This document shows positions 16,261-44,105 of a stretch of DNA of 64,000 bases, one piece after another. The DNA comes from Macrostomum hystrix (Eukaryota; Animalia; Platyhelminthes), in contig CATNEN010000039.1 of NCBI GenBank assembly GCA_950097015.1, positions 6,386,001 to 6,450,000 of the forward strand, written 5' to 3'. Numbering within the stretch: position 1 is the stretch's first letter; the number at the start of each line of letters is the position of its first letter. The notes below the pieces were generated by a model, which saw only the letters and a list, made by a program, of their open reading frames with translations, was not told the DNA's origin and did no database searches. A program made the translations under genes and the position numbers.

Positions 16261-19200
16261 TCACCGTCCAAACAACACGGAGGCCTGCGAGCTGGTCCGT
16301 TGAAAGGCATCCGAGTCGCCAATCAGGGCGTACTCGGACATCGGCCTGTCGTCCCGGCTGTACACTCGGCGGGCCAGCAGGAACAGGACTGCCATCTCGG
16401 GGGCCAAGCAGGCCGCGTTAATCCCTGTGGCATTCAATTTTAAAAGGACTTTCTCATGATAAAATGCGATAAAGACGTAGAGGAACCTGCAGCACCCCAC
16501 ACTGAACTCACAGGCGGCCTTGGCTGCGCTGGACCACAAATGGTCGCATTTGATGACGCTGAATGCGCCGAGGATGTTAAAGATGAGAATCTGGATGTGG
16601 CCAAACAGAATGGCCAGCTTCATTAGACCAAACTTGGCTGTGATGCTGTGGCCAGCCAGAGGACCCCGGGAGACTCGAAAGATGAGGATCAGGCCATAGA
16701 AAGCCAGCGTAGTGGAGATGGTGCGCACCACAACGAACACGGACTCCATCTCCTTGGTAGCCACGGCTAGGGACTGTTTTGAATTGTTATTCGAGTGAAG
16801 CTTCTCTATGAATTTTTCGAAACATATCGGAAAGAGTAAATAGTGCATTAGTTTGCCAGAATAAGGCTTCAGGAAGACTGTACACTATCATATAATTTAT
16901 TAAGCTCTTAAATAGCTCGCATATAAGTAGTGTATTAGACAGTAACATAGCAAATCAACTTTAAGGCAAAGACTGAACCTGAGATTCGAACTCATGACCT
17001 ATCCTCGAAACTGAGCAACACAGCAAAATGTAATTTTAGCCATAACTGTCTCACGCTACTTGCAGTAGCTTTAACCAGATTAAACCCAGTTCTTTATATT
17101 GCTTTTAATCTGCCAAACTAGCTCGTGTTTAGAAATTACAAAACTCACATCGGAGTCGATGGCTATGACGGTGATTAGAAAGCTGACCAGAGGCGGGGCG
17201 ATGATGAATTGCAGCAAAAGCAGATAGATCTTTATTATATTTGATCTGCAAGTGATATAATTTAGCTCTGCTTTACAATTAGCTGTGAATGATGCTACTA
17301 ACAGTAGTACAAAAAGCTTGGCATTCAAGACCGCACCTGCTGGGAGCCACGTCAGGCAAGCAGGGGCAGCAGCAGCAGGCAGGCGGACTGCGCAGTGGGA
17401 ATTTGATCCCATTAGTCTGCAGATATTCAAGCATCTGCTTTCGGCCGCCAAAGTAGAACTGTGTTATGTGCATGAACTTCAGACAGCAGGTGGCGAAATA
17501 GCTGCGATTGTCAACGAATGATCCAATTGGGTTATGAAAATGGCTGATCTAACATGATCACAGCTAACGTGAGCTCACATTGTGTTCACAAAGTCCACCA
17601 GAATTGCAGACCGCGGCACACACAGATTGATTAGCGAGGTAACGCAGAAAAACTGCAACATATTTATTGGGTCTGGGTTATTACACGCGCAAAAATCACC
17701 GCATACATGAGCACCTACTCACCGAATAGATGAGGACCTACTCACCGGATAGATGAGCACCTACTCACCGGATAGATGAGCACCTACTCACCAGATAGAT
17801 GAGCACCTACTCACCGAATAGGCGAGAACCTACTCACCGGATAGATGAGAACCTACTCACCGGATAGATGAGCACCTACTCACCGGATAGATGAGCACCT
17901 ACTCACCGGATAGATGAGCACCTACTCACCGAATAGGCGAGAACCTACTCACCGGATAGATGAGAACCTACTCACCGGATAGATGAGCACCTACTCACCG
18001 AATAGATGAGCACCTACTCACCGAATAGATGAGCACCTACTCACCGAATAGATGAGCACCTACTCACCGAATAGATGAGCACCTACTCACCGAATAGATG
18101 AGCACCTACTCACCGGATAGATGAGAACCTACTCACCGGATAGATGAGCAACTACTCACCGGATAGATGCCCAGCAGCCAAAAGACCCTGATTGCCTGCT
18201 GCCTGTCGCGATAATTAGCCAGCAACTGCAGCACATCGAACAGGTAGAGCAGGCAGGTCAGGACAGCGCACAGTGATGCGACAGTGATGGCAGCTATCGA
18301 GTCTGCAGCACCGGCTTAGAGAAAAATAGTTGATAAATTATTTGATGGAATGCTTTATTCTGAATAGCGCACTGCCCTTCACTCTGAGTAGCGCACTGTC
18401 CTTCACTCTGAGTAGCGCACTGCCCTTCACTCTGAGTAGCACACTGCCCTTCACTCTGAGTAGCACACTGCCCTTCACTCTGAGTAGCACACTGTCCTTC
18501 ACTCTGAGTAGCACACTGTCCTTCACTCTGAGTAGCACACTGCCCTTCACTCTGAGTAGCGCACTGTCCTTCACTCTGAGTAGCACACTGCCCTTCACTC
18601 TGAGTAGCACACTGTCCTTCACTCTGAGTAGCGCACTGCCCTTCACTCTGAGTAGCGCACTGTCCTTCACTCTGAGTAGCACACTGCCCTTCACTCTGAG
18701 TAGCACACTGCCCTTCACTCTGAGTAGCACACTGTCCTTCACTCTGAGTAGCACACTGCCCTTCACTCTGAGTAGCACACTGCCCTTCACTCTGAGTAGC
18801 ACACTGCCCTTCACTCTGAGTAGCACACTGTCCTTCACTCTGAGTAGCACACTGTCCTTCACTCTGAGTAGCACACTGCCCTTCACTCTGAGTAGCACAC
18901 TGCCCTTCACTCTGAGTAGCACACTGCCCTTCACTCTGAGTAGCACACTGCCCTTCACTCTGAGTAGCGCACTGTCCTTCACTCTGAGTAGCACACTGTC
19001 CTTCACTCAAAGTAGCACACTGCCCTTCACTCTGAGTAGCGCACTGTCCTTCACTCTGAGTAGCACACTGCCCTTCACTCTGAGTAGCACACTGTCCTTC
19101 ACTCTGAGTAGCACACTGCCCTTCACTCTGAGTAGCGCACTGTCCTTCACTCTGAGTAGCACACTGTCCTTCACTCTGAGTAGCACACTGTCCTTCACTC

Positions 19201-28526: not shown

Positions 28527-31500
28527 CTAGGTCTTCTTAGACAGACGTCGCGCCTTTTTCTTCACTGGCTGCTGCTGCTGCTGCTCCGGCTGCTCACGAC
28601 CATCTTCTTCTGCTATGCCGGCCGCAGCTTTAGCCGTATCACTGGTCTTAGGCGCTGCTGCCAGCTTCTCAGACAGCAGCTGAGCGCCCCTATATTGCTG
28701 CTTAAGTGCGGACTGCAGCGCAGCTTTGGCTGACGGCTCGCCGCCTAGCAACAGGGTGGCAACGCGTTCACGCAGGCCGCAGTCTTCCGGGCAGCTGTCG
28801 TACAGTCTGTGATTGATTTGCGAATGCCGGTTTAAATCATTATGAGCAGGAGAACTAGGTGTGTATGAATTGTATTCATCTATTAAACTCACTGCAACAG
28901 AAAGAAGCAGCCGCGATTGCAGGCCAGCCAGGACACAATGTTCTCATCGGTGACAAAGTCGTTAATTAATCTAACCAAATCCGGCGCAGACGACAGCAGC
29001 CGTTTGAGCATCAGGTGGCCGGCTGAGCGCTCGATAATGTGCTGCTGCTGCTGCTGCTGCTGATCAGAGTCATCGCCAGACTGGGACGACAGAGTCTGGC
29101 AGGGAACAAACGGCTGACGTATCAGGTCTGCCAGAGCGGCGTAGCAGGCGGACTTCTCGCCTGTGATTGGTTGGAACAGTTGTTAGAGAGCGACTAGACC
29201 TGAGAAAATCCATCCCACCTCCTATACCTGACACCCTATCCATCCTTCACCCTGGACCTGATACCCTATCCATCCCACCTCCTATACCTGACACCCTATC
29301 CAGAGCATCTGCTAGACCTGACACCCTATCCAGAGCATCTGCTAGACCTGACACCCTATCCAGAGCATCTGCTAGACCTGACACCCTATCCAGAGCATCT
29401 GCTAGACCTGACACCCTATCAAGAGCATCTGCTAGACCTGACACCCTATCCAGAGCATCTGCTAGACCTGACACCCTATCCAGAGCATCTGCTAGACCTG
29501 ACACCTTATCCAGAGCATCTGCTAGACCTGACACCCTATCCAGAGCATCTGCTAGACCTGACACCCTATCCAGAGCATCTGCTAGACCTGACACCTTATC
29601 CAGAGCATCTGCTAGACCTGACACCCTATCCAGAGCATCTGCTAGACCTGACACCCTATCCAGAGCATCTGCTAGACCTGACACCCTATCCAGAGCATCT
29701 GCTAGACCTGACACCCTATCCAGAGCATCTGCTAGACCTGATACCTTATCCAGAGCATCTGCTAGACCTGATACCCTATCCAGAGCATCTGCTAGACCTG
29801 ACACCCTATCCAGAGCATCTGCTAGACCTGACACCCTATCCAGAGCATCTGCTAGACCTGACACCCTATCCAGAGCATCTGCTAGACCTGACACCCTATC
29901 CAGAGCATCTGCTAGACCTGACACCCTATCCAGAGCATCTGCTAGACCTGATACCCTATCCAAAGCATCTGCTAGACCTGACACCCTATCCAGAGCATCG
30001 GCTAGACCTGACACCCTATCCAGAGCATCTGCTAGACCTGACACCCTATCCAGAGCATCTGCTAGACCTGACACCCTATCCAGAGCATCTGCTAGACCTG
30101 ACACCTTATCCAGAGCATCTGCTAGACCTGACCCTGCTAACCAACCTGGGCAGTGGCGCAGTGCATCCTGCACAAATAGAATGGTGCCATTGGCCTGACA
30201 CAGCTCAGCCATGCGCCCGCTGACGTGAGACAGAAGGCGGCTGGAGCAGAGGGCCAGGCCGCGATGGAGCCGGTCGCGCAGCTGCTCGGTGGACACCGAG
30301 TCAGAAGATTTGCTGACAATGAGCGACATAAACTGGGGCGGAAAGTGCAGAGGGTCGCGGGGAGACAGCAGGTAGAGAAGCACCTTGCGGCCGTACTGGC
30401 TATCGATGAGCTCCTGCAGCGAGTCGAACAGTTCGCGGAGCAGCAGTTTGTGCAGCTCCTCAGGAGTGAGGCTGTGGCATTCGGCTAAGCCAATCACAAA
30501 CAAGTAGCCGTGCTCGTTGCAGGCTGATGTGCAAAGAAAAGTCTTCATACTTTTCAGCGCCCGCTTTAGGTCTTTGTGCGACAGTTGGCGCGTCACCAGC
30601 AGTGCCACCTTGGCGCCATCTCTGAAATCACCAATGAGTATATATATATATGGATTCGCCAAAAGGGTTTATGCAGAGCAATGTTTGTTGTCCTTGTCAC
30701 CAGGGTCTCCGACAAGAACCGCTGAACATCTCGACGATGCGGGCTCGTACGGCTTTGAAAGTTAGTTCATCATAAAGGGCGGAAAGTATTGATCCATCTG
30801 ATGGACTTTCACGAAAATCGGTGATTCGGTTTGGGGAGCTATCGTGAAGTAGGCAGTGGGTATTTAAAATACCTCTGTGCTCTTTCTACTGCTAATCAAT
30901 CAGCAGCTCACCTGGTGTGCAGCATGGGTACCAGATTGTCCCTAATCAATCAGCAGCTCACCTGGTGTGCAGCATGGGTACCAGATTGTCCCTAATCAAT
31001 CAGCAGCTCACCTGGTGTGCAGCATGGGTACCAGATTGTCCCTAATCAATCAGCAGCTCACCTGGTGTGCAGCATGGGTACCAGATTGTCCCTAATCAAT
31101 CAGCAGCTCACCTGGTGTGCAGCATGGGTACCAGATTGTCCCTAATCAATCAGCAGCTCACCTGGTGTGCAGCATGGGTACCAGATTGTCCCTAATCAAT
31201 CAGCAGCTCACCTGGTGTGCAGCATGGGTACCAGATTGTCCCTAATCAATCAGCAGCTCACCTGGTGTGCAGCATGGGTACCAGATTGTCCCTAATCAAT
31301 CAGCAGCTCACCTGGTGTGCAGCATGGGTACCAGATTGTCCCTAATCAATCAGCAGCTCACCTGGTGTGCAGCATGGATACCAGATTGTCCCTAATCAAT
31401 CAGCAGCTCACCTGGTGTGCAGCATGGGTACCAGATTGTCCCTAATCAATCAGCAGCTCACCTGGTGTGCAGCATGGATACCAGATTGTCCCTAATCAAT

Positions 31501-33044
31501 CAGCAGCTCACCTGGTGTGCAGCATGGGTACCAGATTGTCCCTAATCAATCAGCAGCTCCCCTGGTGTGCAGCATGGGTACCAGATTGTCCCTAATCAAT
31601 CAGCAGCTCACCTGGTGTGCAGCATGGGTACCAGATTGTCCTTAATCAATCAGCAGCTCACCTGGTGTGCAGCATGGGTACCAGATTGTCCCTAATCAAT
31701 CAGCAGCTCACCTGGTGTGCAGCATGGGTACCAGATTGTCCCTAATCAATCAGCAGCTCACCTGGTGTGCAGCATGGGTACCAGATTGTCCCTCAGATTC
31801 TCAATCACCGAGGCGACCGCCCCGGCATCAGCGCTGCCTTCGCCTGCCATCGGTTTGCCAGACAGCGCCTCCTCAAGGTACTCAAGCAGCAGGTGCTGGA
31901 CTAGCGAATGCCGCACTAGATCCTTCTGGGTCAGGGCCAGCAGGTGCTGCTGAAGGTGCTGCATCACTAGGCCGGGTCGCTTTGTAGCCAGGGCGTCCTT
32001 GAGCTTGGTAATGCTGGAAGATTTGAACAAGGCCAGCTCAGGGCCATAGAACTCCTGCAGGATGCCGGCCCTCTGCGAGGCGTTGGCGAACTCATTGTAG
32101 GCCGTCTCAATAAGTTCGGCGGCGAATCTGTGCTTCAACAGCTCCGGCGCTCGGCCCTCCAAAGCTCGGAAAACAAATGCGCGCTGCTCTTTGGCGCCGT
32201 AGCGCAGAAGCTTCTGGGCCACGAACCTGCCGTACTTGGACTTGGCTAGCGGCACAACCTGGTCTTTGAGCTCCTCGAATATCTGCCAGCGCTGCTGCTC
32301 GCTGCCGCGCTTCAACACGGCTTCCAGCACGCGGCCGGTGTCGTGCGCAGCGGCCAGCTCGGCCAGTTTGCCTCGGCCCAGGCGCAGCGCGGAGTCGCAC
32401 AGTTCAGCGACGCGCTTGGCCGGAGTGGCTTCAATCCGCAGCTCCTCCCAGGCTGTGAGCAGCTCCGACACCAGGTCGGCGTTCTTTTTCTGCTTCTTTT
32501 TTAAAATCCGGCGTTCCTTCTTAGTTGGAGGCTGCTGCTGCTTTTGCTGCTTTTTCTGCTGCTGCTGCTTCGGTTTTTTCAATTTCTTCTTATCCGACTC
32601 GTCAATGTCTTCGAAGATGGTCGAGTCGTGCAGCCCGGCAGAGGCATTTTCATTCTCATCCTCGTCGTTTCCGGCGTCATCGTCAACTTCGTCTTCGTCG
32701 GAGGCCGACTGGGGCGGCGGCCGCTTTCGCTTCCGATCGACGCCGCCTCCGATGGCGACAACGCCTCGCTTCTTGATGCTGCTAGCCAGGTTAGCGAGGC
32801 TGCGGCCCATGCGGGGCAGGCCGCCACCGCCGCCGCCTCCTTGACTGCGGCCGGCCGCTTGCGCCTTTGTTGGCTCTCTAAAACTGCCGACGGCGCCCTT
32901 GTCAGTGGCCGGCGTGCCGGACGGCTCGGACAATTTCCTCTTCCTAGGCCGAGCCCCGCCTTCGTCAGCGTTGGCGAATCCAGCGGCTGACTTCAAGTCC
33001 GAGACGGTCTTGCGAAATGCCGATGGCTTGCGACCCAGCGGCAT
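28527..33044 (-). CDS. PUM3: Pumilio homolog 3 / Puf-A / Puf6 (penguin) nucleolar RNA-binding protein, ~768 aa, 4 exons
   Basis: Exons 33044-31762, 30621-30146, 29160-28893, 28806-28527. Acidic/basic N-terminus, then AHDTGRVLE, LAKSKYGRFVAQKLLRYG, IETAYNEFANASQR...QEFYG, MLHTR|DGAKVA, YGRKVLLYLLSPRDP, SAGHLMLKRLL and NRGCF motifs typical of PUM3/Puf-A. Confidence 0.9.
29195..30132. repeat. Minisatellite, 30-bp unit GCTAGACCTGACACCCTATCCAGAGCATCT (PUM3 intron 2)
   Basis: ~29 near-perfect copies. Confidence 0.95.
30892..31792 (-). repeat. 50-bp minisatellite spanning the PUM3 exon 1 / intron 1 junction
   Basis: Minus-strand unit GGACAATCTGGTACCCATGCTGCACACCAG|GTGAGCTGCTGATTGATTAG; 18 junction copies at 50-bp spacing (30911-31761). 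Confidence 0.97.
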
Positions 33045-34175
33045 AATAGCGCCTTCTGATTGGTTGATTGCGATGGGTGCGATAAAAGGCCTTCAGAGTG
33101 CTTCGACTAAAATTTTCAGAACGTCGGCGGGTTGGCTGGAATGGAAAAAGTGAAAGCAAAAAATTAAATAAAAAATATATGAACCGAGTGAAACCGACTT
33201 TTTCTATATAGCTTTGTACTTTCTGAACTTTTTTTTAACTTCAGGTCATTAGGTTTCGGATTATCATGCTTCAGGCCATGAAGTTTCCGTTTTGCAAGCT
33301 TCAGATCACGAAGCTAGAGGGTAGCACGCTTCAGGTCATGAAGTTTTCAGTTTTTCGCTTCAGGCCAAGAAATTTAAAGTTTTTCGCTTCAGGCCATGAA
33401 GTTTCGGCTTTGCAAGCCACACCATAGTTTCTAAAGCCAACCCTTTGTTCCCCCATCGCGACAGACAAACTGGATCCAGATTCCGACTCCGAAGACGAAG
33501 ACGCAACGCCGACACTGCGGCCTCAGAACTCCAGCCATTGAAGGATGAAAGAAGTGGAATTGCAAACTAAAAAACACATTTTGCACACGTCACCGCCCCT
33601 TATTGATAATCCTAACTATTATGCATATTGCTTTCTTTCATTCTTATATATTTCTTCCTTACTTATATATCAATTCAGAGTTCTTATTTGGTTAGGTTGA
33701 CTATAAGGCCTTACTATTAGTTACTATTACGATAAGGTTTACTGAGCGGCAAAAAACACGTGCTATACTACTTACTCGGTACTGCTTTTGATAGTAGTAC
33801 GTACAGACTCCTTGTTATTTATTTAATCTATTAGCTATTTAACTTATTCGCTACTTTATTAATCAGTGAAGACTAACAATTCACTTTTAAGAGAGATTGA
33901 AAGAAGATACCTGTTAAATGACACGATCTATTTATAAATACAATGAGCCGACAAAATGTCAATAAAAATCAAAACAGAAGAATAAGCAAGTGGAATTTAA
34001 ATACCTTTGAACGATTGCAATCTGAATAGGCGTGCTTTAGAGAAAATTATGCAAAAAACAACCTAAAAACAATACTAGAAAACCGTTTTAGGACTGCAGA
34101 TAAATACAATAATGTAACTCAGTAAAATGTTAAATTACTGACAATACTTTGTATTGACTTAAACACACACAACGG

Positions 34176-34875
34176 GGTGTTCGGACGATTCTCAGATGGG
34201 AGGGTGTTCGGACGATTCTCAGATGTGAGGGTGTTCAGACGATTCTCAGATGTGAGGGTGTTCGGACGATTCTCAGATGTGAGGGTGTTCAGACGATTCT
34301 CAGGTGTGTAGGTGTTCAGACGATTCTCAGATGTGAGGGTGTTCGGACGATTCTCAGATGTGAGGGTGTTCGGACGATTCTCAGATGTGAGGGTGTTCGG
34401 ACGATTCTCAGATGTGAGGGTGTTCAGACGATTCTCAGATGTGAGGGTGTTCGGACGATTCTCAGATGTGAGGGTGTTCGGACGATTCTCAGATGTGAGG
34501 GTGTTCGGACGATTCTCAGGTGTGTAGGTGTTCGGACGATTCTCAGATGTGAGGGTGTTCAGACGATTCTCAGGTGTGTAGGTGTTCGGACGATTCTCAG
34601 ATGTGAGGGTGTTCAGACGATTCTCAGATGTGAGGGTGTTCGGACGATTCTCAGATGTGAGGGTGTTCGGACGATTCTCAGATGTGAGGGTGTTCGGACG
34701 ATTCTCAGGTGTGTAGGTGTTCGGACGATTCTCAGATGTGAGGGTGTTCAGACGATTCTCAGGTGTGTAGGTGTTCGGACGATTCTCAGATGTGAGGGTG
34801 TTCAGACGATTCTCAGATGTGAGGGTGTTCAGACGATTCTCAGATCCTAATCTGTCTGGCGTTCGGACGATTCTC
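34176..34875. repeat. Minisatellite, 27-bp unit GAGGGTGTTCGGACGATTCTCAGATGT (duplicated at ~38050-38750)
   Basis: ~25 copies between the DDHD 3' end and the PUM3 5' end. Confidence 0.95.
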
Positions 34876-35165
34876 GAGTGTGAGTTTGCTCTTGTAGAAG
34901 TGCTTCCCAAATTAATGGGTATTTTTCAGCTTGGCTTTCATTTTCGGTTTCAAGCACTTAACAAACTCTACTAAAAGTAAAGTTGGAAAGTGGAAATCAG
35001 ACCTATTCACAAGAAATTAGAAATAAAAAGAAAGTAATGTGGATTACCAATTAATAAACTCATAACATCTGAATTCTGTATGAAAAGCACTGACACCTGC
35101 AAAACAAACTCGTAAAAAAACGATTGGCCAGAGTATCAAGCACGTGGAAGTTGTCTAATAGAATT

Positions 35166-36917
35166 CTAAGAATCCGAAACGGCGGCAGATGGCGCAGTAG
35201 TCCTGGGTGGAGGTGTCTGACTAACTCCGAGTGGTCGATAGACTTCAGTGAGCATGAGCAGGACAGTGTCTTCCGATGCCCAGTAGCAGGCGTGGCTAGT
35301 CAGGGCAAACAGATAATCGTTCACCGCCTCGATCGGGGCCTCCTGCAGCACGTAGTCCAGCCGGCGGCCGCCATTCAAAGCGCTGTCGCAGACGTCCTCG
35401 ATAGATGCGTCTGAATTGTTGTCTTCACCGCTGTCATCTTCTGGAGCCGGCTGCTGCTGCTGCAGCTGACTGTGCGCTGCGGCGAAGCCCTGGAGGCTGG
35501 ACCAGGTGGCCCGAAGTCCGCTAACCAGGCGATGCCGGATGTCGGTGCCAACCCGGGCTAGACTGTCGCGCAGCTGAAGGTGCATCCGCTTGCGACCCTT
35601 GTGGTGCGGAATCTGCACGGCAGCGACAGCGTGATTAAATACAAACAAAGGATATTTGGCAAAGTCAGGAGCTAAACAGGGGATAATTAGTGAACAGAGA
35701 AGAGGGGATAATAAGTGAACGGAGGGATAATTGGTAAACTGACGGGATAATTGGTAAACTGAGGGATAATAGGTAAACTGAGGGATAATAGGTAAACTGG
35801 AGGGATAATTGGTAAACTGAGGGATAATAGGTAAACTGGAGGGATAATTGGTAAACTGGAGGGATAATTGGTAAACTGAGGGGAATAATTAGTAAACTGA
35901 GGGGAATAATTAGTTAACTGAGGGGATATTTGGTAAACTGATGGGAATAATTAGTAAACTGATGGGGATAATTAGTAAACTGAGGGGAATAATTAGTAAA
36001 CTGAGGGGAATAATTAGTAAACTGAGGGGATGTTTGGTATCTAATGTTATAACTAGGTTCATTTATAAAGTGAAGTGATATTGTGAACAATAGGGACAAT
36101 TCTCGTCTGCTTACCAAAAACGGTCACACACCTGGTCTTTGAGCTCCTCGAATATCTGCCAGCGCTGCTGCTCGCTGCCGCGCTTCAACACGGCTTCCAG
36201 CACGCGGCCGGTGTCGTGCGCAGCGGCCAGCTCGGCCAGTTTGCCTCGGCCCAGGCGCAGCGCGGAGTCGCACAGTTCAGCGACGCGCTTGGCCGGAGTG
36301 GCTTCAATCCGCAGCTCCTCCCAGGCTGTGAGCAGCTCCGACACCAGGTCGGCGTTCTTTTTCTGCTTCTTTTTTAAAATCCGGCGTTCCTTCTTAGTTG
36401 GAGGCTGCTGCTGCTTTTGCTGCTTTTTCTGCTGCTGCTGCTTCGGTTTTTTCAATTTCTTCTTATCCGACTCGTCAATGTCTTCGAAGATGGTCGAGTC
36501 GTGCAGCCCGGCAGAGGCATTTTCATTCTCATCCTCGTCGTTTCCGGCGTCATCGTCAACTTCGTCTTCGTCGGAGGCCGACTGGGGCGGCGGCCGCTTT
36601 CGCTTCCGATCGACGCCGCCTCCGATGGCGACAACGCCTCGCTTCTTGATGCTGCTAGCCAGGTTAGCGAGGCTGCGGCCCATGCGGGGCAGGCCGCCAC
36701 CGCCGCCGCCTCCTTGACTGCGGCCGGCCGCTTGCGCCTTTGTTGGCTCTCTAAAACTGCCGACGGCGCCCTTGTCAGTGGCCGGCGTGCCGGACGGCTC
36801 GGACAATTTCCTCTTCCTAGGCCGAGCCCCGCCTTCGTCAGCGTTGGCGAATCCAGCGGCTGACTTCAAGTCCGAGACGGTCTTGCGAAATGCCGATGGC
36901 TTGCGACCCAGCGGCAT
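35166..36917 (-). pseudogene. Chimeric duplicate: PUM3 5' exon portion (36917-36130) joined to the last intron and last exon of DDHD (35612-35166)
   Basis: ORF 36111-36917 is identical to the PUM3 N-terminus up to ELKDQV and then diverges. ORF 35166-35648 is identical to the terminal DDHD exon region. Confidence 0.75.
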
Positions 36918-39039
36918 AATAGCGCCTTCTGATTGGTTGATTGCGATGGGTGCGATAAAAGGCCTTCAGAGTGCTTCGACTAAAAATTTTCAGAACGTCG
37001 GCGGGTTGGCTGGAATGGAAAAAGTGAAAGCAAAAAATTAAATAAAAAATATATGAACCGAGTGAAACCGACTTTTTCTATATAGCTTTGTACTTTCTGA
37101 ACTTTTTTTTAACTTCAGGTCATTAGGTTTCGGATTATCATGCTTCAGGCCATGAAGTTTCCGTTTTGCAAGCTTCAGATCACGAAGCTAGAGGGTAGCA
37201 CGCTTCAGGTCATGAAGTTTTCAGTTTTTCGCTTCAGGCCAAGAAATTTAAAGTTTTTCGCTTCAGGCCATGAAGTTTCGGCTTTGCAAGCCACACCATA
37301 GTTTCTAAAGCCAACCCTTTGTTCCCCCATCGCGACAGACAAACTGGATCCAGATTCCGACTCCGAAGACGAAGACGCAACGCCGACACTGCGGCCTCAG
37401 AACTCCAGCCATTGAAGGATGAAAGAAGTGGAATTGCAAACTAAAAAACACATTTTGCACACGTCACCGCCCCTTATTGATAATCCTAACTATTATGCAT
37501 ATTGCTTTCTTTCATTCTTATATATTTCTTCCTTACTTATATATCAATTCAGAGTTCTTATTTGGTTAGGTTGACTATAAGGCCTTACTATTAGTTACTA
37601 TTACGATAAGGTTTACTGAGCGGCAAAAAACACGTGCTATACTACTTACTCGGTACTGCTTTTGATAGTAGTACGTACAGACTCCTTGTTATTTATTTAA
37701 TCTATTAGCTATTTAACTTATTCGCTACTTTATTAATCAGTGAAGACTAACAATTCACTTTTAAGAGAGATTGAAAGAAGATACCTGTTAAATGACACGA
37801 TCTATTTATAAATACAATGAGCCGACAAAATGTCAATAAAAATCAAAACAGAAGAATAAGCAAGTGGAATTTAAATACCTTTGAACGATTGCAATCTGAA
37901 TAGGCGTGCTTTAGAGAAAATTATGCAAAAAACAACCTAAAAACAATACTAGAAAACCGTTTTAGGACTGCAGATAAATACAATAATGTAACTCAGTAAA
38001 ATGTTAAATTACTGACAATACTTTGTATTGACTTAAACACACACAACGGGGTGTTCGGACGATTCTCAGATGGGAGGGTGTTCGGACGATTCTCAGATGT
38101 GAGGGTGTTCAGACGATTCTCAGATGTGAGGGTGTTCGGACGATTCTCAGATGTGAGGGTGTTCAGACGATTCTCAGGTGTGTAGGTGTTCAGACGATTC
38201 TCAGATGTGAGGGTGTTCGGACGATTCTCAGATGTGAGGGTGTTCGGACGATTCTCAGATGTGAGGGTGTTCGGACGATTCTCAGATGTGAGGGTGTTCA
38301 GACGATTCTCAGATGTGAGGGTGTTCGGACGATTCTCAGATGTGAGGGTGTTCGGACGATTCTCAGATGTGAGGGTGTTCGGACGATTCTCAGGTGTGTA
38401 GGTGTTCGGACGATTCTCAGATGTGAGGGTGTTCAGACGATTCTCAGGTGTGTAGGTGTTCGGACGATTCTCAGATGTGAGGGTGTTCAGACGATTCTCA
38501 GATGTGAGGGTGTTCGGACGATTCTCAGATGTGAGGGTGTTCGGACGATTCTCAGATGTGAGGGTGTTCGGACGATTCTCAGGTGTGTAGGTGTTCGGAC
38601 GATTCTCAGATGTGAGGGTGTTCAGACGATTCTCAGGTGTGTAGGTGTTCGGACGATTCTCAGATGTGAGGGTGTTCAGACGATTCTCAGATGTGAGGGT
38701 GTTCAGACGATTCTCAGATCCTAATCTGTCTGGCGTTCGGACGATTCTCGAGTGTGAGTTTGCTCTTGTAGAAGTGCTTCCCAAATTAATGGGTATTTTT
38801 CAGCTTGGCTTTCATTTTCGGTTTCAAGCACTTAACAAACTCTACTAAAAGTAAAGTTGGAAAGTGGAAATCAGACCTATTCACAAGAAATTAGAAATAA
38901 AAAGAAAGTAATGTGGATTACCAATTAATAAACTCATAACATCTGAATTCTGTATGAAAAGCACTGACACCTGCAAAACAAACTCGTAAAAAAACGATTG
39001 GCCAGAGTATCAAGCACGTGGAAGTTGTCTAATAGAATT

Positions 39040-42000
39040 CTAAGAATCCGAAACGGCGGCAGATGGCGCAGTAGTCCTGGGTGGAGGTGTCTGACTAACT
39101 CCGAGTGGTCGATAGACTTCAGTGAGCATGAGCAGGACAGTGTCTTCCGATGCCCAGTAGCAGGCGTGGCTAGTCAGGGCAAACAGATAATCGTTCACCG
39201 CCTCGATCGGGGCCTCCTGCAGCACGTAGTCCAGCCGGCGGCCGCCATTCAAAGCGCTGTCGCAGACGTCCTCGATAGATGCGTCTGAATTGTTGTCTTC
39301 ACCGCTGTCATCTTCTGGAGCCGGCTGCTGCTGCTGCAGCTGACTGTGCGCTGCGGCGAAGCCCTGGAGGCTGGACCAGGTGGCCCGAAGTCCGCTAACC
39401 AGGCGATGCCGGATGTCGGTGCCAACCCGGGCTAGACTGTCGCGCAGCTGAAGGTGCATCCGCTTGCGACCCTTGTGGTGCGGAATCTGCACGGCAGCGA
39501 CAGCGTGATTAAATACAAACAAAGGATATTTGGCAAAGTCAGGAGCTAAACAGGGGATAATTAGTGAACAGAGAAGAGGGGATAATAAGTGAACGGAGGG
39601 ATAATTGGTAAACTGACGGGATAATTGGTAAACTGAGGGATAATAGGTAAACTGAGGGATAATAGGTAAACTGGAGGGATAATTGGTAAACTGAGGGATA
39701 ATAGGTAAACTGGAGGGATAATTGGTAAACTGGAGGGATAATTGGTAAACTGAGGGGAATAATTAGTAAACTGAGGGGAATAATTAGTTAACTGAGGGGA
39801 TATTTGGTAAACTGATGGGAATAATTAGTAAACTGATGGGGATAATTAGTAAACTGAGGGGAATAATTAGTAAACTGAGGGGAATAATTAGTAAACTGAG
39901 GGGATGTTTGGTATCTAATGTTATAACTAGGTTCATTTATAAAGTGAAGTGATATTGTGAACAATAGGGACAATTCTCGTCTGCTTACCAAAAACGGCTC
40001 AGGCGGATAGCGCGGTAACAGCGGCTCCAGTCGGTAGGCGATCGGATCGAAGGGATGAAAAATGTTGAAAAGTCCCGGCCCGTTTTCTCTCTCTTCGCCT
40101 CCGCTCACACATTCACCGCCAGCAGCAGCAGCAGCCGGGGCGGGCAGTTGATAATCAGCAGACAAGCTGGCCACTCCGCGCGAAGTTAGAAATAGAGCAA
40201 TCGGCGAGCCAATAGCGAACAGCGCCTGGGGCGCGAACTCCAGACTGGGATAGGACAGGCAGGGGAAGCAGGAGGAGGCGCCGCTGTTGTCGCCAACCAA
40301 TCGCAGCTGGCCGATGATGTAAGTGACCGAGTCAGAGGCTGCGGCTGCTGACGTCGCTGCCGACTGGATTGAACTCGGCTGTGGTACTGGCTGCTGCTGC
40401 TTTGTCTGCTCCAGCTTGGGCAGGTCTTCGACAGTGCTGGCTGCGCGCGCAGACGCGGCTAATAGCTTCTTGCGAGGCCCCAGCGGAATGCCCAACTCCT
40501 GGATTAAAAAGGTTTTTAAGGTATAGTAGCTGTAAAGGGGGTTGGGTGGCTAAACGGTTAACGCGTTCACCTCTCGCACCAAGGTCCCTAAGCTCGATTC
40601 CGCGGCGAGGCTGCATTCATTTGGAGGGCCAGCCTCCAAGGCACAGTGAGATTGTACACTGCCTGACGATGAGAGAAGTCAGGGCAGATGTACACACCTG
40701 TGTGAGCATATGCCTGCGTACAGTATCTATGTGCGTGTGTGCTCAGGAGTCAGCGAAATGGGCAGAATTGCCTCCTCGCTGGCTGCGGGCCTATTGTCAC
40801 AAATGATGTGCCATTGCCAGCAGCCCTCCTGCAATTATTATTATTAAGGTACAGTAGTGTAGGTGCTTGTGAGTAGCATTTTAACATTTAATATTGATAA
40901 ACATTTTCACACTGGTATCCTAATACGTACTTTATCAAGTTAATGATGGATTAATGAGGGGTTGGAGCTGCGGCTGTGCTGTCGGCTGCACATCTGACCC
41001 AATCGGGGCTGTAGTAATCAATTATTATTATTATTCAGTTGAGCACTTATTAGATCTACTCATAATCAGGGGACATTGCAGCTCAGTGGATAGAGCTTAG
41101 TAACTTCCTGACCGAGAGGTCGTGAGTTCTAATCGAGGCCAAGGGCAAGCTTGCTATATTTGCGTCCTTGAGCAAGACACCTGATTTGCTGGTGCTTGAG
41201 TTCAACCAGCTGTAAGATGAGCATCAGCATCGGCTGTACTTTTATTATTTTTTATCTGTCAGTATTCAGGTAACCGAAAAAATCTAACCTTTAACTCCGC
41301 ATCGGTCAGCGCGCTGAGCAGCCGCACGCTATCGATGCCGCCGTCTGTTAGCTTCTGACGGACATTCGCCGACTCGCCCAGTCCAGCCAGTCGCAGATAA
41401 TTATCTAATTCGATCTTGTTAGTGTCATCTGGCGACGAGTTTGACATCGAAGACGGTGCCGCTGTGGAATTTGTCGTCGGTGATGGCGGAACGGTTGCCG
41501 GAGCCAAGCCCTGGTGAGCCAGGATGTCGAATGCGATGACGGAGCCTAGCGAATGGCCAACCAATGAGAAGCGACCCGTGTAGGAGGGATTTCTGGACAG
41601 GAATAGGCGCCTCAGCCGGTTGATCTGAAATATATCTAAATTCTATGATTGAAATATTTTTTAAATAGGAAGAAATTTTGCGATTCTAAGGGAAAAGGGA
41701 TCTTCAAAAATTGAAGGATATTCAAACGAATCAGGGATTTGACGCAATTTAGAGGAATTGACGCAATCTATGAGATTTGACAGAATCTAAGGGATTTGAT
41801 GAAATTTAGGGGATTTGACGGAATCGAAGGGATTTGACGGAATCTAGGGGATTTGACGGAGTCTAGGGGATTTGACGGAGTCTAGAGGATTTGACGGAAT
41901 CTAGGGGATTTGACGGAATCTAGGGGATTTGACGGAATCTAGGGGATTTGACGGAGTCTAGAGGATTTGACGGAATCTAGGGGATTTGACGGAATCTAGG

Positions 42001-44105
42001 GGATTTGACAGAGTCTAGGGGATTTGACGGAGTTTATGGGATTTGACAGAATCTACGGAATCTCGGGTGGCTAAAACACAAATATAGACAAAAACTGCTC
42101 ACACAATTGCAACATGTTGGCTATTATTGTTGAGCTTATTGTATTGATTATGTTTGTTAATACACTTTTGAACCCGTAGCCCGTGGTCTCTCTATTGCTA
42201 AAAGAATCTAATGATCTAATGAATGAATGAATGATCTAATGAATGATCTAACGAAGGAATCTTGGGGAATCTAAGTATCTTGGGTAAAAATATGAAAATC
42301 ATGTCCTCGTAGCAACCCCGCCCAACACTACCGAGGAAGACTCACCTCTCGCCCAACAGTGTCCACAATAGTCTGCATGTATCTCGGACTGCTATAGAAC
42401 AGCACATCAGTGAGCGTGTCGTTAGCAAATCTTCGCAGCTTTGGTATGGACTGCAGACTGATTCTCTTTAACTGGGCATCTAGTCCTGTGGTGTGATCGC
42501 TGCGCAATGCGGAGTGCCAGTGCACCGGCAGGAACTCCACTCGGCCAGTTCGACTGGCGAAATGAGACCGAGTGAGCTCGCCAGCCAGGTACCGCATTCG
42601 GTCCACGCACTGGACCAGATTGTGACCGAGCAGGTCGTATACTGAGCCAATACCGTGCACTACAAACAGCACGTGATCCACAGGATAGCTGGAGTCAGCG
42701 TCTGGCGGCAGGCGACCCGGGAACTGCTTCATGCCTCTGCGGATGGACGGAATTAGCTCACAAAATGTGCGATTGCACACCCCACCCTGTGCGATTGCAC
42801 ACCTCACGCAGTGCAATTGCACACTCCACCTAGTGTGATTGCACAGCCTACAGACACCCCACCCTGTGCGATTGCACACCTCACGCAGTGCAATTGCACA
42901 CAACCCAGTGACAGTGTGATTGCACAGCCTACAGACACCTCACCCAGTGTGATTGCACAGCCTACAGACACCTCACCCAGTGTGATTGCACACCCTACAG
43001 ACACCTCACCCAGTGTGATTGCACACCCTACAGACACCTCACCCAGTGTGATTGCACACCCTACAGACACCTCACCCAGTGTGATTGCACACCCTACAGA
43101 CACCTCACCCAGTGTGATTGCACAGCCTACAGACACCCCACCCTGTGCGATTACACACCTCACCCTGTGCGATTGCACACTCCACCCAGTGTGATTGCAC
43201 AGCCTACAGACACCCCACCCTGTGCGATTGCACACCCCACCCAGTGACAGTGTGATTGCACAGCCTACAGACACCTCACCCAGTGTGATTGCACAGCCTA
43301 CAGACACCTCACCCAGTGTGATTGCACAGCCTACAGACACCTCACCCAGTGTGATTGCAGACTAACCTGAAAACCACCCGGTGCAATACACCGGAGCCCA
43401 AGCCGCCGCTTGCTAATCCATCGCTTTGCATCTGCATCATGACATTCGGGCTGAGGAACACAAACTGAGTTCCGTCGCCATCGCAAGCCAGGCTAAATTG
43501 TTTCCGCCATTCGCCGCTCAGTACAGTGCGCTGGTAGTGCCGCTCCAGCAACTGGCTAGCGGCTTCATCGTATGGGATGAATGTGGTGGACGCGTCCTCG
43601 CCATCTGGTCGGTAAAACCAGGTGCAGCGACGAATTTCCGACGAGGAGGAGGCCGCATCGGAGTCGGCTTCGTTGGCCCAGTAGACTGGGCGCATGACAC
43701 GGTGGGATAAATCTGCATCATACCTGCGTTAAGGTTGGAGAAGCAATCGATACATAGTTATGATCAGTTAACCCATAATGCTGCCAGTTTATCTGTCAGT
43801 TAATCTCCCACAATGCTACAAGTTTATCCCATTAGGCTGTTATTGTAAACGCACCTGCCACCATCAACAGCCACAATTTTTTCAGTCGCAGTTGTCTCAG
43901 CTTCCTCCAATAAGTTTGAGTCGTACTGAGAAAATGGCAGCCAGACTAGAAGCTTGGCGTCTACACGATGCCTGTGAAACCAATGTGGCTGCACTGGACA
44001 ATATGAGGGCAACGATGACTGAATGCTTGTTGATGATGGCAATGGAAATGAACAAGACTCTGCAGGCTTAGGCAAAGATTTATCTAGATCACTATTAGAT
44101 GACAT
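39040..44105 (-). CDS. DDHD2: DDHD-domain intracellular phospholipase A1 (SEC23IP/DDHD2-like), ~763 aa, 6 exons
   Basis: Exons 44105-43855, 43723-43367, 42736-42346, 41624-41289, 40498-39989, 39486-39040. Motifs: PHWF...WLPFSQYDS...DGGR|YD, RPVYW, RRCTWFY, DHVLFVVHGIG, RVEFLPVHWH, lipase GHSLG, SAM (ELK|ELGIPLGPRKK), and DDHD domain (FNIFHPFDPIAYRLEP, IPHHKGRKRMH, RRLDYVLQE, SHACYW). Cannot distinguish DDHD2 from SEC23IP orthology. Confidence 0.88.
39555..39905. repeat. Minisatellite, 22-25-bp unit GAGGGATAATTGGTAAACT (last DDHD intron; copy at 35680-36030)
   Basis: Degenerate tandem units. Confidence 0.9.
40537..40620 (+). mobile_element. Possible tRNA-derived SINE head
   Basis: GGTGGCTAAACGG (A-box-like) and AGCTCGATTCC (B-box-like) at tRNA spacing; no intact cloverleaf. 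Confidence 0.35.
41068..41230 (+). mobile_element. tRNA-derived SINE-like element in a DDHD intron
   Basis: A-box-like GCAGCTCAGTGG and B-box-like GAGTTCTAATC, followed by TCCTTGAGCAAGACAC...GTTCAACCAGCTGTAA, which is shared with the element at 56140. Confidence 0.6.
41735..42060. repeat. Minisatellite, 20-bp unit GGGGATTTGACGGAATCTA (DDHD intron)
   Basis: ~15 copies. Confidence 0.9.
42766..43360. repeat. Minisatellite, ~33-bp unit CCAGTGTGATTGCACAGCCTACAGACACCTCAC (DDHD intron 2)
   Basis: Starts within ~6 bp of the donor at 43366 and fills the intron. Confidence 0.93.

Follow-up and report, generated by a model that had tools for sequence, protein, structure and literature searches.

In the human gene F7, intron 7 (IVS7) carries a 37-bp variable-number tandem repeat whose first element spans the exon 7/IVS7 border, and only the most upstream of its 5 to 9 identical donors is used (Borensztajn et al. 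2006, PMC1557585). A related arrangement, tandem repeats of exon-intron borders termed "mirages," occurs in the Adh3 and globin genes of amphioxus, where normal splicing is undisturbed (PMC3087553). Here we describe an array of this sort in the flatworm Macrostomum hystrix, in which intron 1 of the PUM3 gene opens with 18 copies of a 50-nt unit that contains the exon 1-intron 1 border. The gene lies on the minus strand of a 64,000-nt stretch of contig CATNEN010000039.1 (positions 6,386,001 to 6,450,000; assembly GCA_950097015.1). This whole stretch is referred to below as the window, and all coordinates are positions within it. The array is most likely a harmless repeat of an already known kind. 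More specifically, we consider it a young, locus-private, junction-spanning mirage minisatellite that is removed with the intron from the first donor, and to this reading we assign a probability of about 0.75.

As in F7 IVS7, the first PUM3 unit spans the border, identical donors follow the authentic one, and splicing runs from the most upstream donor to a single acceptor (this product being seen in one contig). Unlike F7, PUM3 has 18 copies rather than 5 to 9 and a unit of 50 nt rather than 37 nt, its units end in CAG and are about as long as the small introns of the species, and its donor choice is known from one contig and not from mutagenesis. The likeness to the amphioxus mirages lies in a minisatellite-like duplication of the border, the presence of AG/GT in many units, normal splicing, recurrence across loci and a repeat-rich genome. 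In amphioxus the units range from 10 to 160 bp, are present in fewer copies and are 81 to 100% identical, whereas PUM3 has 18 near-identical copies and belongs to a flatworm.

Recursive splicing at AG/GT ratchet points takes place in long introns of Drosophila and vertebrates, tens to hundreds of kilobases in length, and the known recursive sites are conserved and have strong pyrimidine tracts. At the PUM3 unit borders a 3' splice site likewise adjoins a 5' splice site, giving zero-length exons. Unlike the known cases, however, the PUM3 intron is not very long (1140 nt, or 1.1 kb), its tracts are weak, its sites are recent copies that arose as a by-product of duplication rather than conserved sites, and no intermediates were seen among the listed contigs. 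In the Rogers model and in human tandem-array introns, duplication reportedly creates an intron or alternative introns. The PUM3 units resemble these in that each repeated unit carries GT and AG signals; unlike in the Rogers model, the PUM3 intron already existed and was merely enlarged.

The array accounts for the growth of a small intron to 1.1 kb, and it provides a natural test bed, an essential ribosome-biogenesis gene whose real donor is followed by 16 exact decoys. Transgenesis works in the genus, having been established in the sister species M. lignano, and the first-donor rule of F7 is testable here in a distant animal that trans-splices its mRNA and has tiny introns. This array and the other cases in the genome show that intron size in Macrostomum is shaped more by the growth of minisatellites than by transposons. 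For gene predictors, long runs of false donors of this type call for caution.

Structure of the array and of its host gene

Tandem Repeats Finder (TRF) placed the array at 30892-31793, with a period of 50, 18.0 copies, 99% matches and a score of 1776; as a repeat it is far beyond chance. On the minus strand, the unit consists of the last 30 to 32 nt of exon 1 followed by the first 18 to 20 nt of intron 1, and the intron contains 17 extra copies of the exon 1-intron 1 border. The original prediction, made from the letters of the window, had described the unit as a duplicated exon 1/intron 1 junction in 18 copies, and both TRF and a unit-by-unit table agree with it. Its division of the unit into 30 nt of exon and 20 nt of intron holds as one option among those allowed by the 30-32 and 18-20 nt ranges: the exon tail and the unit are identical over 32 nt, not 30, since AG is present at both breakpoints (a 2-nt microhomology).

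The unit table contained 18 donor copies, 17 of them with an intact GT, and 17 complete GT...AG units, which begin with GTGAG and end with CAG as had been predicted. The internal borders read CAG/GTGAGC at all 17 except unit 5, and 16 of the 17 downstream donors are identical to the authentic donor, the remaining one being GG. Across units 1 to 17 (31761 down to 30912) there are only four variant positions, namely, G>A at position 20 of unit 3, C>T at position 34 of units 6 and 8, and GT>GG at 31561-31560 in unit 5, where the change at 31560 had also been noticed beforehand. The decoy donors lie at 31711 minus 50k, and the 18th donor (30911) opens the final 290 nt of the intron. A search of the 220-Mb genome returned no other match to the 50-nt unit, which is private to the PUM3 locus. 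The RNA fold of the array was not unusual (z = +0.55), and no structure in it sets the first donor apart or hides the decoys.

The host gene has four exons and three introns, which is unusually few. Pfam matches to PF00806 (PUF) and PF22493 (PUF_NOP9) were obtained in exon 1 and to PF08144 (CPL/NUC119) in exons 2 and 3; PUF repeats followed by a C-terminal CPL (NUC119) domain form the layout of the PUM3/Puf-A/Puf6 family. The best database relative was a 776-aa protein of M. lignano (P0001), 80% identical over exon 2, and farther database matches carry the annotation pumilio homolog 3. P0001 is colinear across all three junctions, reading ...NLVPMLHTR/EGVKVALL... at the exon 1/2 point, ...RHCPG/EKSACY... 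at the exon 2/3 point and ...FLLQ/LYESCPEDC... at the exon 3/4 point, and these readings fix the gene model. The exons were searched separately, and a joined translation was made locally solely to locate the first stop. The ATG is at 33044, the last base of exon 1 is the G of ...CACACCAG at 31762, and the 5' untranslated region extends up to 33135. In the whole assembly there was no paralogue or second allele of PUM3 that could serve as a shorter reference.

The proposed course of events is as follows. A 50-nt segment bounded by the AG microhomology (32 nt of exon 1 and 18 nt of intron 1) would have been duplicated in tandem, and the duplicate would then have multiplied, probably through slippage or unequal exchange, until 18 copies were present. 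An intron of about 46 nt that already held the 245-bp repeat fragment would in this way have reached 1140 nt. With its native exon context kept, the first donor is used and joins the single acceptor at 30622; the 17 downstream copies would leave with the intron and the protein would be unaffected. In a genome that is about 30% minisatellite and whose introns were small, an array seeded in an intron would have little room and would need to adjoin or overlap the donor, and this overlap would be tolerated.

RNA contigs across the exon 1-exon 2 junction

The RNA evidence consisted of assembled contigs (Logan) of public runs, and the region compared was 31230-33300, which covers exon 1 and 11 copies of the array. 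A 455-nt contig from run X1 matched 31762-32011 without mismatch and continued for another 205 nt, an extension whose first letters are the reverse complement of AGATGGCGCCAAGGTGGCACTGCTGGTGAC, with which exon 2 starts. The contig thus joins 31762 directly to 30621, i.e., the first donor to the normal acceptor. PUM3 mRNA is made from the most upstream donor, as seen in this one informative contig. Removal of the array in a single step, which the original prediction had offered as a fallback, fits this junction, the sole RNA evidence on the point, and we infer that such removal is what occurs and that the array is neutral. Among the listed contigs and joints, there was no distal-donor junction, no deletion of n x 50 nt and no skip of 20 nt, in a type of assembly that drops rare forms. 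The possibility that the 20-nt GT...AG piece acts as a micro-intron, leaving an in-frame DNLVPMLHTR repeat in the protein, was rejected, as both the RNA contig and the orthologue are without such a repeat.

In runs X5 and X6, exon 1 was covered by a 1397-nt contig, and beyond 33136 the contigs carried 23 foreign letters that correspond to the end of the spliced leader (SL) RNA exon. This exon end, ...TTATTGCATG/GTAAG, has 33 copies elsewhere in the genome, each of them then followed by GTAAG, and several of the copies are arranged in tandem at a spacing of about 11.6 kb on contigs C15, C17 and C42. The presence of the leader end on the contigs indicated that runs X5 and X6 are RNA and that PUM3 is trans-spliced at 33136/33135. 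The RNA contigs also show one extra A at 33108.

Several observations weigh against a harmless repeat removed from the first donor. The 50-nt unit is close in size to the inferred ancestral introns (46 to 70 nt), and at -14 it has CCCAT where the true acceptor has CTCAT. The copy number has a single source, the assembly of one inbred line, made from PacBio continuous long reads (CLR) with canu. The junction was obtained from one run only (X1), which differs from the window 4 times in about 1.1 kb, and contigs, in which the array collapses and rare isoforms are dropped, cannot show intermediates, lariats or isoform levels. The X5/X6 contig ends at 31764, because the shared stretch of 32 nt branches a 31-mer assembly graph, and it is therefore silent on donor choice. 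Finally, array words were found in X5 and X6 at depths of 42 and 28, versus 39 to 42 for the exon, and some array-containing RNA or DNA is thus present. At about 18 copies per molecule, this depth would amount to unspliced RNA, excised intron or DNA at a level of a few percent.

The size of the unit and the composition of its borders raise the alternative of stepwise splicing, in which each 50-nt unit would be a spliceable tiny intron and CAG/GTGAG would regenerate a donor at every step. The units could also serve in a corrective second splice, in which a distal-donor mistake would be repaired by splicing donor 1 to the retained CAG and the normal mRNA would be restored. All 17 units begin with GTGAG and end with CAG; the introns that we take to precede expansion measure 46 to 70 nt and intron 3 measures 86 nt, which puts 50 nt near the natural lower range; the true PUM3 acceptors (AATCACAG twice and GATTTCAG) are no richer in pyrimidine than the unit's own CACACCAG; and the end product would equal the mRNA of the X1 contig. 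We nevertheless regard stepwise splicing as unlikely. The yUnAy-like motifs of the unit (CTGAT and TTGAT) are merely 12 to 16 nt from the donor, the listed joints included no intermediate and no n x 50 deletion (contigs being weak evidence here), the identical downstream donors of F7 are simply ignored, and the host intron is 1.1 kb compared to the tens of kilobases of known recursive splicing. Moreover, a neighbouring gene has a donor array with a 23-nt unit that cannot work in this way, yet its position is the same, at an exon that has an open frame and matches Pfam. If the 50-nt units did act as working introns, removed piecemeal and with distal-donor mistakes self-corrected, this would explain why donor-spanning minisatellites are so widely tolerated in Macrostomum genes, but we think it improbable.

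Joining any distal donor to the true acceptor leads to a stop at codon 428, right after ACC AGG, as had been foreseen. This stop, together with 16 decoy donors that are intact and match the authentic one exactly, is what favors a regulatory sink, in which distal-donor transcripts would gain an immediate TGA and be degraded by nonsense-mediated decay (NMD), with the length of the array tuning PUM3 output. We give such a sink very little credence, in that the listed contigs contained no distal-donor form, the base rate of arrays (see below) explains the placement without function, the near-identical units point to recent neutral expansion and the pseudo-sites of F7 do not compete. The ideas of recursive splicing and of an NMD sink are at present unsupported.

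The true copy number could be far lower than 18, or the junction duplication could itself be an error of canu or of polishing, since the assembly was made from PacBio CLR data with canu and polished with Arrow and Pilon, and the neighbouring DNA holds a tandem duplication of 3.87 kb at 100% identity. However, a 78-nt loop contig of the array unit, including the unit-to-unit join, was present in both X5 and X6, i.e., in two independent runs. In addition, variant units are scattered through the array, long reads easily span 900 bp, and many such arrays exist in the same genome. An artefact of assembly is accordingly a highly improbable explanation.

Base rate of donor-spanning arrays

The position of the array on a donor was compared with the frequency of arrays in the genome. 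With minisatellites defined by a period of at least 10 and at least 4 copies, the 34 arrays of the window make up 36% of its length; in a 200-kb sample drawn from 20 places on 15 contigs, 90 arrays make up 28%. Both shares exceed the total repeat content published for the assembly, 22.9%. The annotation of M. hystrix comprises 34,543 genes with 5 introns per gene (PMC10468722). These figures give 0.78 donors per kb, and random seeding would place about 2 to 3% of arrays across a donor, for an expectation of 0.77 donor-spanning arrays per window and about 2,500 genome-wide. Two were observed in the window (those of PUM3 and of an OST-alpha-like gene) versus the 0.77 expected. The position of arrays on donors is about what random seeding gives, with no sign of enrichment. 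Against an expectation of about 2 for the 200-kb sample, a crude screen of the 124 arrays for periodic GTRAG with an upstream open frame yielded no certain donor-spanning array there, and two candidates without a Pfam match.

In the OST-alpha-like gene, 20 GTGAGTAG donors follow one another at an exact spacing of 23 nt, the unit includes the last ~10 nt of the exon, and the intron continues for 70 nt past the last donor. This array occupies the same position as that of PUM3, at an exon of a predicted gene with an open frame and a Pfam match. Since 23 nt is too little for an intron, this case argues that arrays of this type can be tolerated without unit-wise splicing. An array in a WWE-domain gene was considered as a further donor-spanning case and rejected as a look-alike, because it is purely intronic and starts about 15 nt past the likely donor.

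In the four introns inspected (PUM3 introns 1 and 2 and those of the OST-alpha-like and WWE-domain genes), the array begins no more than about 15 nt past the donor, or at the donor itself. Such starts fit growth inside once-tiny introns. In a tiny intron, only the stretch directly behind the donor would be free of branch-site and acceptor constraints, and a longer unit would consequently overlap either the donor or the 3' signals. The former overlap would presumably be harmless, and the latter harmful. An annotation-free scan for a length peak of short introns (GT[AG]AG...YAG with open-frame flanks) gave no signal over the decoy-motif control.

History of intron 1 and features of the surrounding region

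The original prediction had taken the ~290-nt remainder of intron 1 to be the ancestral intron, which did not hold up, in that a dispersed repeat accounts for 245 of the 290 nt. First-look candidates of this family numbered more than 2,400 in the genome, and the 40 that were scored showed 82 to 89% identity. Homology among the copies begins exactly at CAGTAGAA, directly after the 20 nt behind the last donor. Other copies extend at least 150 bp further 3', and the copy in the PUM3 intron is thus a truncated fragment. We also considered whether this repeat was an "introner" that had supplied the splice sites; this was rejected, because neither the donor-bearing 20 nt nor the acceptor region recurs in its other copies and the PUM3 copy is itself truncated. 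The element therefore did not bring the splice sites.

The acceptor AG of intron 1 is at 30623-30622. When the array and the repeat fragment are left out, 20 + 26 = 46 nt remain, and the original intron 1 was probably about 46 nt long. The units are 99 to 100% alike, compared to 82 to 89% between the fragment and its family, and the array is therefore likely younger than the repeat insertion. From these sequence comparisons, the likely order of events would be a tiny intron, then insertion of the repeat, and then the recent duplication and expansion of the junction.

The earlier proposal that the intron was itself gained by tandem duplication of an exonic AGGT segment, as in the Rogers model, is favored by the AG/GT within the units and by the small number of introns (three) in the PUM3 gene. 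An intron gained in this manner would consist of duplicated exon only and would restore the exons exactly; in PUM3, three parts of the intron are non-exonic, namely, the 20 nt that follow every donor, the fragment of the dispersed repeat and the 26 nt at the 3' end. The 20 nt do not come from exon 2 and have no counterpart in the orthologous protein of M. lignano, which is colinear across the junction, and the array includes neither the acceptor nor the 3' part of the intron. Together, these features indicated that the intron predates the duplication, and the proposal of intron gain, which we consider extremely unlikely, was abandoned.

Coordinates of the gene, the array and other features discussed are compiled in Table 1.

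Table 1. Positions in the window of PUM3, the parts of its intron 1, and arrays in two other genes
Feature	Position	Strand	Basis
AG acceptor for trans-spliced leader	33136..33137	-	X5/X6 contigs; leader joined to 33135
PUM3 exon 1, coding part	31762..33044	-	428-aa open reading frame, Pfam, P0001, RNA contigs X5, X6, X1
PUM3 intron 1, 1140 nt	30622..31761	-	RNA contig X1, P0001
Authentic 5' splice site, GT of CAG/GTGAGC, first of 18 copies	31760..31761	-	X1 contig
17 complete units, each GTGAGCTGCTGATTGATTAG + last 30 nt of exon 1	30912..31761	-	TRF, unit table
18th donor + original first 20 nt of intron	30892..30911	-	Sequence, unit table
~245-bp 5' fragment of dispersed repeat, adjoining array end	30648..30891	-	Genome search and alignments
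(TA)n, then original intron 3' end (ACTCATTGGTGATTTCAG)	30622..30647	-	X1 contig junction, P0001
PUM3 exon 2	30146..30621	-	Pfam CPL (NUC119) profile positions 2-87; P0001 colinear
PUM3 intron 2, 985 nt	29161..30145	-	CPL profile resumes in exon 3; P0001
PUM3 exon 3	28893..29160	-	Pfam, P0001
PUM3 intron 3, 86 nt, without array	28807..28892	-	P0001
PUM3 exon 4	28527..28806	-	P0001; stop codon TAG at 28529-28527
OST-alpha-like (Solute_trans_a) donor-spanning array, 23-nt unit	17696-18169	-	Sequence, Pfam match
WWE-domain gene intron array, 33 nt, periodic GTGAG	42912-43359	-	Likely donor TTCAG/GTTAGT

The tandem 3.87-kb segmental duplication noted above comprises ~32253-36124 and 36125-39998, which are 100% identical but for a 2-bp indel. 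It begins inside PUM3 exon 1, and a truncated 5' copy of PUM3 (about 264 codons and the upstream region) lies upstream of the complete gene. This duplication is either very recent or an assembly artefact.

A separate array occupies PUM3 intron 2 (29222-30132; 30 nt x 30.4). It is purely intronic, beginning 13 nt past the donor GTTGGT, and each of its units contains CAG/GT. The array is stop-free in the frame of exon 2, with VSGLADALDR repeated, and retention of intron 2 would add about 300 residues before a stop.

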